From contig JAHDYR010000015.1 in NCBI GenBank assembly GCA_019828565.1, positions 63,223-127,222 on the forward strand: DNA of 64,000 nucleotides, written 5' to 3'. Under the pieces are notes generated by a model. The model ran no database searches and was not told the origin of the DNA. It saw only the letters and a list, made by a program, of their open reading frames with translations. Position 1 is the first letter of the stretch, and the number at the start of each line of letters is the position of its first letter. Positions 26,003 to 32,300 of the stretch are shown here, in pieces. Origin of the DNA: Carpediemonas membranifera BICM (lineage: Eukaryota > Protista > Fornicata). The position numbers were made by a program, and so were the translations under genes.

Positions 26003-26565
26003 GCCCGGCACTGTATTCATTATTCATCGATGCGACGTTATTGTCGTTGGAATTGTTTTTTTTCATGTTAAAAAGGGTTAGAAGGTATAATAGTATTCTC
26101 GCCAAGGTCTGCCACCTCAGCCTGGCCGAGGGTCGCGTGTTCAACCCCAAATCAAAACCGACTCGCCAGCATGGGTATGATAAACCTCGCGCAAGCCAAC
26201 CCGTGTCATCATCATAACCTCTACGACAAGAAGGGTGTGCTGCGGGCGCCGGCATCTCCACACGGAGCACAGCCCACGGCTACTCTCAGTGCAGACGCAC
26301 GGGTCGATATCAATTACTCCGTGTTCGAGGGCAAGGTGATAAACGGCTGCCCTGAGAGCATGGGGCAGCGGATGGTGCTGAATGTCAGCGAAGTGAGGCA
26401 GAGCTTGGCTGCGGGACACTCTGAGTCTGCCTCATCATATCAACGATCGAGGAGCAGTAGAAATATAAGGTGAAGGTCAGTGGAGTTGAGGGTTGGGGTG
26501 ATTTACTTTGTTACGTGAAGTATCCGTATCTCTGTCAACTGGAAACCACGAGTGGTCAGCAGAAG

Positions 26566-27361
26566 ATGAGCTGCGTGGAAGTGCAAGACCTTCTACCACT
26601 CCTATTCGAAGGAAGAGAGTCTATAACCGAGATCGAGGTCGAAGATCCCGTGATTAAGCGCTTCATGGCTATCGTTTGTCGCCTTTTTCTAGTTCTCACG
26701 CCAGATGACCAAGATCCAAAGCGTAGAGGATGATGTGAGCAAGAATAAGTCTATATTCGTCACTGGCGAGATCACCACGGAAGCGGAAGAAGCAGTACTC
26801 GAGCAGATCATCGCAAGATACTTGGCGATGGTGAAAGCACTCACAGAGGAGAGCGAGGACCTCATCCGCCTAATCAGTAACAACACGCCCAAAGACTTAA
26901 GCACAGCTCTCCAAACAACCCTGGATAGCCACGCATACCACCTCACCGCCATGCTCGAGCGGCTGCAGGCCAACCGACTCCGCCAGTCACGGGCTAGAGC
27001 GGTCTGGGCCCTCAGAGACGCTGCCCTCACCGAGCCCCTGGCCGACGTCTGGGCCGATGTTAGCCCGCAGTTTATGTCATACGAAGAGTTGCCCCAGGAG
27101 ACACTGGGTGCCAAGCGGCTGGAGAACGCGATGAGGGAGATCAGCGGGTTCAGTAGGCTGTTTGCGGCGCGGGTGGACATGCAGGCTGAGCAGATCAACC
27201 TGCTCCACGACGACGCCGTGATGACGCTGGACAGCATGCAGCGGGGCAACGTACAGCTGTGGAGGGCACATAAGCATCTTACCAGGGGCACTAAGATGAT
27301 TGTGGCGTATCTATTGGCGGCGACTGCGTGTCTATGGATGCTCCACTACATCAACGACTGA
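26566..27361 (+). CDS. Qa-SNARE, syntaxin-18/Ufe1-like; intron 26674-26704
   Basis: SNARE helix LENAMREISGFSRLFAARVDMQAEQINLL and a C-terminal TM anchor; 31-nt GTTTGT...CTCACGCCAG intron. Confidence 0.75.
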
Positions 27362-27637
27362 CGGGCGAGATGGAATGGAATATGGTGTGCTTGGTGTCGG
27401 CTCTACAGCATATTCTGGCCATGGCGATGCCATGAGATGGTGATGGCGCGATGAATTCAGAGCCAACCCTGCCATCAATCTAGATACGAAATGGATCCAA
27501 AAATAAAAATATGAGCAGCTATAGGCACGTAATGGGCGGTTCTAGAGTCGCGGAGGTCGTCCAAACCTCGGGGGTTGGGTTGCAGAAAAAAGTTAGATGG
27601 GCGGGAAAAAATCGGACAAAGGACAAAGGAGGCTCGA

Positions 27638-28339
27638 ATGCTCTCGTCCTCGTACAGTTATGGATCATTTTCCGAGATGCCATGTTTGTTTCCTCTTATT
27701 ATGCTATTACGCAGGGTTCGTTTCACATCAGCCTTCTCTTTACCCAGGGTTACTTCCTTCTTATCCGAAAGAGGCAACGATTTGCTTTGCGAAGTGCCAG
27801 TAGAGTTTATTGAGGACTCTTTCAACCTTACCGGGCTTGATCAGCAGGTTCCGTACTATGATGACGCCCTGGACATTATTCTGGATGAGAGCACTGTTGA
27901 TAGCGATGTTCTCCAGGAATCCGCGCGCCTCCTTTATGCCCTCATTCATCAGCGCTACGTTATCACTCCCTACGGGCTCGGAGACATGAAGCGGAAGTAC
28001 AAGAGAGGGGAGTTCGGCAAGTGCCCCCGGGTCTTGTGTAACCACCAGCCAAGCGTACCAGTAGCCGTCACCCAGAAGCCAGGAAAGGACTGCGTTCGGT
28101 TCTTCTGCCCGCGGTGCAAGAATATCTACTTCCCCAAGTCTCGGTACCACGAGGGCGTCGACGGGGTGTTCTTTGGGACAACATTCGCCCACCTCTTCTT
28201 CATGACTTATAGTGACCTCATCCCACAAGAACCGCCACACGAATACGTCCCTAGGATCTTTGGGTTCCGCATTTTCGACGAGGAGGCCTATAAGCGGCGG
28301 CATGAAGCGAAAGCCATCAAGATGAAGGAAGAAGACTGA
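27638..28339 (+). CDS. CSNK2B: Casein kinase II regulatory (beta) subunit; predicted introns 27684-27714 and 27716-27747 flank a 1-nt exon
   Basis: RGNDLLCEV..EFIEDSFNLTGL, FGKCPRVLC, FCPRC, DGVFFGTTF, YVPRIFGF. Confidence 0.95.
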   Translation: MLSSSYSYGSFSEMPCLFPLIMLLRRVRFTSAFSLPRVTSFLSERGNDLLCEVPVEFIEDSFNLTGLDQQVPYYDDALDIILDESTVDSDVLQESARLLYALIHQRYVITPYGLGDMKRKYKRGEFGKCPRVLCNHQPSVPVAVTQKPGKDCVRFFCPRCKNIYFPKSRYHEGVDGVFFGTTFAHLFFMTYSDLIPQEPPHEYVPRIFGFRIFDEEAYKRRHEAKAIKMKEED

Positions 28340-28573
28340 TTGTACTCATTTGAACATAAATATTGCGCGATTGCCATGATCCGGAGACTGTGGGGGTGCT
28401 GACGACTTGGTACTCTGGTTGACTATCGAGCGAGGCGATTGAAGTCATCGGGATCATATTAGGCATAAGACCAGTATGCTAAGCATCTCTGGACGTGCCA
28501 ATGAATGACAGCAGAATTTTTTTCGCAGGTTAAGACCAGAAACTGGCATTTTGCCGAGATCTCGTCGTAGAGA

Positions 28574-28999
28574 ATGTGTAAGCATATCCTTAACGCTCAA
28601 GTTGCGATTCGTGCCCCTTGCTGCCGGAGGTGGTTCGATTGCCCCCAGTGCCACGCTGAATCCCAGGATCACGAACTCGAGCAGAGCTACGAACTCACTC
28701 TTGCTTGCAAGAAGTGCAAGAAGGTCTTCCGAATTGACTTGCGCGAAGGCGAGCGCGATGAGGCCGATGAGTTCTGCCCCCACTGCGACAACCACTACGT
28801 CCTGGAGGCCGTCACTCCCGAGGACAAGGCCGAGCTCCGCATTGAGGCCGAGGAGGGCAAGGAGTCTGAGATGATCCGCGATACCCGTGACCATAACAAG
28901 GAGCGTAGGCGCCAGCATGCCATGGAAGATGCTGACTTCCTCACCCAGCACATCAAGAAGATGGCCGCCCAGAGCGACTTCAACGGCATGTACCAGTAA
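28574..28999 (+). CDS. CHY zinc-finger protein
   Basis: MCKHILNAQVAIRAPCCRRWFDCPQCH...CKKCKK...CPHCDNHY. Confidence 0.85.
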   Translation: MCKHILNAQVAIRAPCCRRWFDCPQCHAESQDHELEQSYELTLACKKCKKVFRIDLREGERDEADEFCPHCDNHYVLEAVTPEDKAELRIEAEEGKESEMIRDTRDHNKERRRQHAMEDADFLTQHIKKMAAQSDFNGMYQ

Positions 29000-29381
29000 G
29001 GAGAGCCGGGTGCCGTGTAGGCGCTGGCTATCGCTGAACAATAGATTGTGTTAAAATGCGATTGTTTGACTGCAAGATTGCGAGATGATCAAACAAACAT
29101 GAGGGAACATCGATAATGCGAAGCATCTAGCCTATTCCAGTCATGTGCTATACCGGTACGCTATGTATTCCTTACTATATCGCGTCAACCCGGCGTTTTC
29201 CACTGTTTCAACCGGACATAAACATCACTCAACCCTGCACATGTGTGGCGGATCAATAAAAAGCGTTTACTCTATATGAAGAAGGCCCAGTGCCCTCTGA
29301 TACGATACATGATTTTAGTCCACGACGGCCTGATCTTGAACAGTGATCTGGAAAACTTTTTGTCCGTTTCGAGACGACATC

Positions 29382-32300
29382 ATGTCAACAGGTTCTGAGA
29401 GCGAGGTATCTGAGGCCTCTTCTCCCGACATCGGGGAAATAGAAGCTCAGAGCCACGGTCTTTCGCTTCATTCGATGAGTGAAAGCGAATCCACGGCCAG
29501 TGATGGCGATATGCCTCTCCCTGACGAGGATAACTTCGCTATGAGCTTTGTTCCACGCAGGGATGGCGAGCATGATCATGCAGTGGACAATGATATTCGT
29601 GCAGCCATCGCACGGCTCGCACATCAGGAGGCCGAGCAACCAAACTCCCCATACACCATGAAGCTCTACAGCCAGCACGAACAGTCGGGAAAGCGGCTCA
29701 ACCACGCCGACGAGACCATTCCAGAGGAGCATGAGGGCCCTTCTTCGCTCAAAGCGAGACTCACATCCCTGTCTCCCTTCGGAAAGAAGAAGAAGGCTCA
29801 GGCAGGCAAAGCCAAGGGCCTCGGTACCATCTTCGGAGTGATCGTGCCCACGTGCCAGAACATCCTCGGCGTCATCCTCTTCCTCCGGCTCTCCTGGATC
29901 ACTGGCGAGGCCGGGCTCCTCGGCACGCTCGGCATCATCGCCGTGTGCACCCTCTCCACAATCCTCACGGCCATCAGCGTTTCCGCGGTCTCCACAAACG
30001 GCCCGATCAAGGGCGGCGGCACGTACGGCCTCATCTCCCGGTCACTGGGCCCGGAGATGGGTGCAGCCATCGGTATCCTCTTCTATATGGCGCTGACCGC
30101 TGAGTGTGCCATGTACATCATCGGTGCGGCTGAGCTAGTCCAGAGCATGTTCGAATTCATCCCCCAGGGCGCTCTGGGCGTCCGCATCCTCTCGCCCATC
30201 TTCCTCGTCGGCGTGCTCGCCGTTGTCTTCGGTGGCATGAAGTTCATCTCTCTCATGGCCCCGATCTTCTTCCTCGTCACCCTGGTCTCCATCGGCGGCA
30301 TCTACGTCGGCCTCCTCTCCCTCCCCCGGGACCTCAACCGTGGCATGTACCCCGGCCTCATCAGCACTCAGCCGCTGGACGCAATCAAGAGCAACCTCAT
30401 GCCGGCCGCCGCATTCGGTGCCGTCTCTGAGCTGTTCTCCGTGTTCTACCCCTCCGTCACGGGCATCATGGCCGGCCCCAACAGGGCTGCCTCTCTCAAG
30501 GCCCCCGGCAAGGCTATTCCTCTCGGGACGACATCCGCAATTGGGCTCACGACGTTTATCTACGTCTCCATCGTCGTGCTCTTCTGCTTTACGATCGATA
30601 ATGATACTCTACGTAACACGTATCAAATGATTGACGGCAAGCGCTTCTTCCCCGTCTCCGAGGTCTCCTGGCCCACCCGGTACATCGTAGACGCCGGCAT
30701 CTTCTCCTCAACCATCGGCGCTGCTCTGCAGACAGCCACTGGCGCCCCACGCCTCCTCCAGGCAATCGCCAGCGACAACGTCCTACCAATCCTGAAGCCC
30801 CTGCGGCACCGGGTGCTCGGCAACCCGGTCCCCGCTACGGTGTTTACTGCGGTCCTCGTGTTCTTCATCCTGATGATGGGCGAGCTGAACGCGATCACAC
30901 CCATCACCACGATGTGCTTCATCATGTGCTACCTCTCTGTCAACTTCTCATGCGCCCTCCAGGGCATGATCCGGTCGCCCTCATTCAGACCCAAGTTCAA
31001 GTTCTGGTCGTGGAAGGTGTCGATGTTTGCCGTCTTCCTCTGCATCATCATCATGTTCCTCATATCATGGTACTACGCCCTCATCGCCATCGGCCTGTCC
31101 GTCGGCATTTATAAGTATGTCCAGTGGACCGGCGCCAAGCAGAACTGGGGCGACGGCATCCGTGGCTGGAGGATGCAGCAGGTCCGGTCGGGCCTCCATT
31201 CCCTCGATGAGATCGCCAAGGACGTCCACCCCAACAACTGGCGGCCACAGCTGCTTGTGCTCCTCACACTCGCCACGCCCGAACGGGTGTTGACTCACTA
31301 CAAGAACATCGACGCCCTCGCCGCCTTTGGTCGCCACACTGTCATGGCCGGCCTCGCCAAACGCGCCCCAGCTGGGGGTGACCCGAACAAGACAATCCAC
31401 ACCGCCCAGGAGGCCGCCCTGCCCGAGTTCAACCGCGAGCGGGAGGACCTGTGCTGCGAGTGTGACGAGGACTGCCCGCCGCTCGTCCCCCTCCACCCGG
31501 GCCTGTTGTCCCTCGCCGCACAGCTCCGGAAGAGCAAGGGGCTCACCGTTGTCGGTGCTGTCGTCGAGGGCTACCCCAGAGAGACGCTGGCCGTCAGACG
31601 GGCCGTGAAACACCACATTGAGCGGATCATGATGCCCTCCAAGCTCAAGGCATTCGTCAGCGTCATTAGCTACCACACGAGCGACAGGAGCGAGTGCGAA
31701 CTCCTTGGGGCAGCCAATCTCGTCGAGAGCAGCGGGCTCGGTGAGATGAGACCGAACTGCGTACTGGCGCACTGGCCTGACGAGTGGCGCAACCCCGCCT
31801 CGAGCAAGAGTGCGTACAAGTTCTTCCGGTTCATCAGCACGTGCGAGGCGGAGAAGATGGCTGTCATTTTGGCCCGGAATCTCACTGACTCACCCGCCCC
31901 CAAGGACAGGGCGAGCGGCACAATAGACATATTCTGGTTCCTTCACGACGGCGGGTTGCTCCTGCTCCTTCCGTACCTCCTGAAGAAGCACAAGACATGG
32001 CGTCACTGCGGGATGAGGCTTTTCACAGTCGCTGAGCCAGGCGACGACACGGCCCGACTCCAGAAGAAGATCGAGGACCTCCTCGCCTCTGCCCGCATCG
32101 AAGTCGAGTCTATCACGGTCCTGGAGCTCGACGCGGAGGTCAAGGAATACGCCTACCAGCGCACGGTGCTGCTTGACCAGCGTCGGGAACTCCTGATGCA
32201 GCTCAACGGCAGTTTCGACGCTGACATGCTCGTGGATGAGATCTCGCACCATCGCGAGACACCGAAGGAGCCTGATCACGACCGCGTGCTCATCATCGAC

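Follow-up and report, generated by a model that had tools for sequence, protein, structure and literature searches.

The casein kinase 2 beta (CK2-beta) gene of Carpediemonas membranifera, a free-living protist, contains an exon of a single nucleotide, which we hold with high confidence to be constitutive and to be joined to its neighbors through two separate canonical GT-AG splicing reactions. The mature mRNA is made up of exon 1, one G and exon 3, and encodes a normal CK2-beta of 212 amino acids; each segment flanking the G is a complete intron of the type used in this genome, and a second species shares the arrangement. The gene lies in the window, by which we mean the whole 64,000-nt stretch of contig JAHDYR010000015.1 that was analyzed, and coordinates given without a locus name are positions within it. 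The assembled genome comprises 24.2 Mb on 69 contigs, with 57.1% GC (PMC8516963).

Architecture of the CK2-beta gene and its transcript

The features of the gene were as follows:

27618 to 27683, + strand: exon 1, with a 20-nt 5′ UTR, the ATG at 27638, codons 1–15 and the T of Trp16
27684 to 27714, + strand: intron 1, 31 nt, phase 1, donor GTTTGT, 3′ end ...TTACGCAG
27709, + strand: putative branch A of intron 1, 6 nt from its 3′ end
27715 to 27715, + strand: exon 2, a single G, the middle base of TGG (Trp16)
27716 to 27747, + strand: intron 2, 32 nt, phase 2, donor GTTCGT, 3′ end ...TTACCCAG
27742, + strand: putative branch A of intron 2
27748 to 28372, + strand: exon 3, with the last G of Trp16, the CK2-beta domain (PF01214) and the stop at 28337–28339
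28367 to 28372, + strand: poly(A) addition at the end of exon 3, placed by the poly(A) loose ends of cDNA contigs

On re-inspection, the coordinates and motifs that an initial annotation had assigned to the 31-nt intron, G27715 and the 32-nt intron proved exact. The G is preceded by AG and followed by GT, and each of these dinucleotides is part of a complete intron; the whole intron-exon-intron unit measures 64 nt, with both introns near the minimum size for the genome. Exon 1 was delimited by cDNA contigs that start at 27618 behind library adaptor, and the N-terminus it encodes matches that of GenBank KAG9394297.1. With both introns removed, the frame from the ATG at 27638 gave 212 amino acids, including MPWVTSF with Trp16 present, and this product was identical to KAG9394297.1 (C. 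membranifera, 212 amino acids); the correct CK2-beta protein is already public, and the product is an ordinary CK2-beta. Skipping of G27715, using a single 64-nt intron, shifted the frame as had been predicted and left a 33-amino acid product with a stop at codon 34, while removal of intron 1 alone or intron 2 alone gave 44 and 47 amino acids, respectively. The unspliced form read through as 233 amino acids, its 63 nt being in frame and free of stops, and it lacked the Trp, in keeping with the earlier claim that retention of both introns loses this residue. P-W-V was restored by none of the in-frame single GT/GC-AG introns listed for the CK2-beta 5′ end.

Transcript evidence came from the cDNA contigs of four runs (X1–X4), all from one 2017 sample in one study, aligned to 26200–29400. 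The contigs behaved as cDNA, covering genes only, ending in poly(A) and starting with a non-genomic tail. X2, X3 and X4 each provided one full-length contig that matched 27618–27683 and then 27747–28367/72, while in X1 the junction was outside contig coverage. The joint 27683>27747 amounts to a net skip of 63 nt, with 66 nt on its short side, which is the skip predicted from removing both introns and keeping one G, and the cDNA contigs displayed no other letters or gaps over the gene. The doubly spliced junction that the initial annotation had foreseen is present in these three libraries of one sample, whose mature mRNA has exactly one base between the neighboring exons. The GT..CA label that the aligner gives to this joint comes from its choice of G27747 over G27715, which is the same letter, and the cDNA alone fits two introns or one non-canonical 63-nt intron equally. 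Neither the 64-nt skip nor a retained or half-spliced form was found among the assembled contigs, which drop rare forms, and the contigs of this single sample included no lariat or singly spliced intermediate. The RNA check proposed earlier was thus borne out for the doubly spliced junction and not for the intermediates, and the outcomes that had been named as contrary to the exon (transcripts that are only unspliced, that skip the G or that use other splice sites) were absent from the contigs.

We also considered the 24-nt 5′ tail of the cDNA as a spliced leader and rejected it, as the tail is absent from the genome and present in five unrelated RNA-sequencing papers; it is taken as library adaptor. 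In the segments 28356–28372 and 29051–29069, both mapped poly(A) sites are 8–18 nt downstream of TAAA with GCGATT nearby, a possible polyadenylation signal. Another contig carries a near-identical copy (P0123) of the CHY zinc-finger gene at 28574–28999, and this copy probably accounts for variant cDNA contigs. On the other side of the CK2-beta gene, an intron-like 31-nt segment (26674–26704), outside cDNA contig coverage, ends just before the ATG at 26705 of an upstream ORF that is membrane-anchored and has no Pfam match.

The gene is CK2 beta, with a full-domain match to PF01214 well above threshold (E 4e-64, 216 bits versus a curated cut-off of 27, model positions 4–182 of 182). The C. membranifera protein resembles other CK2 regulatory subunits in its full domain, in conservation of Trp16 and the RGN motif, and in its visible CxxxxC...CxxC zinc ligands, but differs from them at the second Trp of WIxWF, which is Ser in C. 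membranifera and Ala in its relative, and at the N-terminus, which reads YSYGSFSEMP and is without the usual acidic stretch. The column of Trp16 was Trp in 113 of the 114 aligned homologues that have a residue there, and G27715 is needed both for the frame and for this conserved residue. Database searches for homologues used exon 3 as the query; the matches listed named no CK2-beta from Kipferlia or Aduncisulcus, and a metagenome scan revealed no third Carpediemonas-like CK2-beta gene. A second, divergent CK2-beta of 243 amino acids (L002 1453–2184 and L102) has Phe at the Trp position and no intron at the equivalent site. In the relative's copy of this divergent paralogue, an intron seems to be present further downstream.

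Conservation in a second Carpediemonas species and competing explanations

The nearest homologue (P0001, 88% identical) is from assembly GCA_002919055.1, run SRR4018424, which probably represents C. frisia. The corresponding region of this relative was laid out as follows:

L005 4909–4942: intron 1, 34 nt, position as in C. membranifera
L005 4943: single-G exon
L005 4944–4977: intron 2, 34 nt, position as in C. membranifera
L005 4978–5016: 8-nt exon and a third intron of 31 nt, both without counterpart in C. membranifera

As read from its genomic DNA, the relative's full frame of 217 amino acids (MPWVTAF) was obtained only with all three introns removed, and the ORF-called protein P0001 begins at an ATG inside intron 3. 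The two species are well separated, with differences at 43/65 fourfold (66%) and 24/74 twofold sites of exon 3. The intron cores have diverged as well, while the splice signals and the internal AG-G-GT persist. The proposal that a one-base exon restores the Trp is thereby backed by the cDNA, by KAG9394297.1 and by a layout kept in the orthologue. In contrast to the diverged exon 3, the coding end of exon 1 (27653–27682, encoding YSYGSFSEMP) was identical at 29/30 positions between the species, for which P is about 0.02 against the exon-3 synonymous rates, near-saturated elsewhere, in a post hoc comparison; this offers a weak hint of an exonic signal.

The reading that the cDNA leaves on an equal footing, in which a single non-canonical 63-nt intron (GT..CA at 27684–27746 or TT..AG at 27685–27747) is removed in one step, is highly improbable once the relative is considered. 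The aligner's label agrees with it, and odd boundaries are known in the lineage, as in a Giardia intron described as having a CT 5′ end (PMC1201135). The main argument against it is that its ends would differ between species, since in the relative they would have to be GT..AA or TA..AG for an intron of 68 nt, and the internal acceptor-G-donor, for which such a model has no use, is conserved with full motifs. Another reading supposes a single 64-nt GT-AG intron, with the G added by RNA editing or its genomic counterpart an assembly artefact. Pairing of donor 1 with acceptor 2 is conceivable, as both sites are strong, but a templated G between full splice signals is also present in the independent assembly and run of the other species (L005, L006), and the absence of other letters or gaps in the cDNA of the gene likewise leaves this explanation next to no likelihood. 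The same negligible probability applies to a stwintron, in which one intron interrupts the other's splice signal and forces the order of removal. Two introns do abut here, and stwintrons explain 1-nt intron shifts in fungi (PMC5587772); however, in the unspliced RNA the donor and the acceptor of each CK2-beta intron are intact, and no splice site or branch point is interrupted by an internal intron. [quoted passage not shown] Nor does an AG run directly into a GT, as in a recursive zero-length exon, since one G is between them and is kept in the mRNA.

A further possibility, compatible with two reactions, is that the cassette is also a regulated switch, through a functional double retention (233 amino acids, no Trp16) or through skipping that lowers CK2-beta. 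The in-frame, stop-free 63 nt would permit this, and plant VPS55 has isoforms with and without its 1-nt exon that arise by intron retention (PMC8831610). We consider such a switch unlikely, given that no retained or skipped contig was found (contigs drop rare variants) and that no stable RNA structure was predicted over the cassette (z +0.8 and +2.0). The retention frame is also not kept in the relative, where retention of two introns (68 nt) frameshifts and full retention stops at codon 41, which removes the support for the in-frame retention isoform suggested in the initial annotation.

In a survey of intron positions in ten outgroup CK2-beta genes, the phase-1 Trp intron was found in 0/10, and a phase-2 intron in the equivalent Trp codon was found in Pneumocystis carinii (L098, 41 nt) and was absent from Neolecta and eight other outgroups. 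Gonapodya CK2-beta has an intron at residue 19, phase 0, one base off the relative's third intron. Intron 2 may be old, or may be a parallel gain at a G|G site, the match being in 1/10 outgroups and across paralogues. Intron 1 looks lineage-specific, and there is a faint suggestion that it was gained, one base upstream of intron 2, before the divergence of the two Carpediemonas species. Tandem duplication was rejected as the origin of the pair, as introns 1 and 2 match each other at 20/32 positions, versus 16–21 of 32–34 for matches to non-orthologous introns.

Short introns and tiny exons across the genome

Introns of the type seen here have a GTWYGT donor and a YTHACVCAG end and are mostly 28–36 nt long. 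Scored with a matrix built from 23 motif-picked introns, intron 1 reached 9.9/9.9 bits (donor/acceptor) and intron 2 reached 9.6/11.8, with medians of 9.5/13.1, and both score as typical for the genome. An A at −6 was invariant in this set, whose frequencies are partly circular as it was chosen by motif, and the consensus suggests that this A is probably the branch point. Across the genome, GTWYGT...YTHACVCAG gave 703 matches at 25–41 nt (control 40) and 85 at 60–76 nt (control 28), the longer set including tandem pairs and one repeated family. Candidate introns of ~64 nt do exist, then, and length alone does not bar skipping of the G.

When the window was put through 60 first-order shuffles, tandem pairs spaced by 1 nt never appeared. 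In the genome-wide scan for tandem introns that had been proposed, back-to-back complete introns with a 3-nt spacer gave 27 matches (control 1), so that abutting introns are routine in C. membranifera; a 1-nt spacer gave 3 matches (control 3), of which CK2-beta alone survived inspection. As the 1-nt matches are at control level, the genome-wide count alone does not single out CK2-beta; the cDNA and the relative do. Spacers of 0 nt (1 match, control 2) and 2 nt (1 match, control 1, not credible) were no more frequent. Among the candidates rejected were L058 and L059 as 1-nt exons, which are start exons with an ATG just upstream and no upstream intron; L086, which is antisense inside a 1019-codon open frame and has weak donors; the 2-nt candidates L039–L041, L066, L077 and L088, which miss one flanking intron or are at control level; and L020 as a 0-nt exon, where an exon begins with GTTCGT by chance.

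Other loci displayed tiny exons in their DNA layout. L012 1481–2503 (G000:C4:171586-172089) has 15 introns of 28–36 nt separating exons of 3 nt (ten), 6 nt (three) and 9 nt, all multiples of three, and its predicted splicing yields a frame of 190 amino acids whose N-terminus is rich in Cys and His; in the public database, P0124 (144 amino acids) corresponds to the last exon only. At L038 1470–1527 (G000:C34:44869-44926), just past the start of an SPFH/Band 7 gene, a 30-nt and a 28-nt intron abut around a candidate zero-length exon; the first ends in an in-frame TAG, and the frame from the nearest ATG is preserved only if both of these well-scoring introns are removed. Several gene copies (L043, L067, L070, L081) contain repeated cassettes in which exons of 12 and 6 nt are set between short introns, with an additional 3-nt ATG exon at L043. 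In a family of about 20 copies (L021–L035, L047, L051 and L052, on C5, C26, C49 and C63), a 3-nt exon, CTG, is flanked by an intron of ~28 nt and a candidate intron of ~64 nt. More tandem introns, with 3-, 5- and 6-nt spacers, were present at L019, L044, L046, L008, L065, L079, L083 and G000:C13:965298-965480, including short chains at C13 and L046.

Splicing mechanism and significance of a one-base exon

For the CK2-beta cassette, it is sound to infer that the introns are recognized by intron definition and spliced sequentially. With the branch A at −6 fused to the acceptor, each intron would carry all of its own signals, and each donor would pair with the nearest acceptor without any need for the exon. 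As there is no room for two spliceosomes at a distance of one base, one intron would be removed before the other (the argument of PMC4674806); the G would then simply terminate a longer exon, and the remaining intron would be excised normally. In plants, it is the downstream intron that tends to be removed first (PMC8831610). A preference for ~30-nt introns would disfavor skipping of the G, as judged from short introns outnumbering long ones roughly ten-fold.

One-base exons are less exceptional than the initial annotation implied, as three nuclear cases have been published, in plant APC11, plant VPS55 and Fusarium CYP621A (PMC4674806, PMC8831610, PMC12940212), and this genome has many 3–6-nt exons. 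The Fusarium case, which has orthologue and RNA-read support, is alike in having a single G within AG-G-GT that forms the middle codon base in a conserved motif, but it occurs in another gene and another supergroup, its intervening region is 139 nt in F. graminearum versus 64 nt in Carpediemonas, and the Carpediemonas relative adds an 8-nt exon and a third intron (PMC12940212). APC11 and VPS55 share a conserved, frame-required 1-nt exon for which sequential intron-defined splicing was proposed (PMC4674806, PMC8831610). In Arabidopsis APC11, however, the base is 333 nt into a 422-nt region, and mutation showed it to be a true exon (PMC4674806), and plant VPS55 has retention isoforms (PMC8831610), whereas the Carpediemonas contigs show the inclusion form only. 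Recursive splicing and fungal stwintrons (PMC5587772) likewise involve abutting intron units that are excised consecutively, but these leave no exon base, whereas Carpediemonas keeps one and neither of its introns depends on the other's removal. We found no report of a 1-nt exon in metamonads, or of one with such short flanking introns, in an open-access collection of papers from which many journals are missing. What is new is the lineage (Metamonada) and the 64-nt unit; the mechanism is not.

The finding adds Metamonada to land plants and Fusarium as groups with 1-nt spliceosomal exons, and does so in an intron-poor genome in which both CK2-beta introns survive. It leaves the biology of the CK2-beta protein unchanged. 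For annotation, it means that aligners report such sites as non-canonical 63-nt introns, and the ORF call in the relative starts inside intron 3. Since skipping within the 64-nt unit would use two strong sites, the cassette offers a small and clean system in which to test nearest-site intron definition and splicing order. We lean toward the broader view that the spliceosome of this organism has no lower limit on exon length, that self-contained introns of ~30 nt are removed singly, and that exons of 0, 1, 3, 5, 6 and 9 nt are constitutive. If so, no 1-nt exon unit more compact than the 64 nt of the CK2-beta cassette would be known, and the cassette would serve as a minimal natural substrate on which to ask how two reactions one base apart are ordered without skipping.
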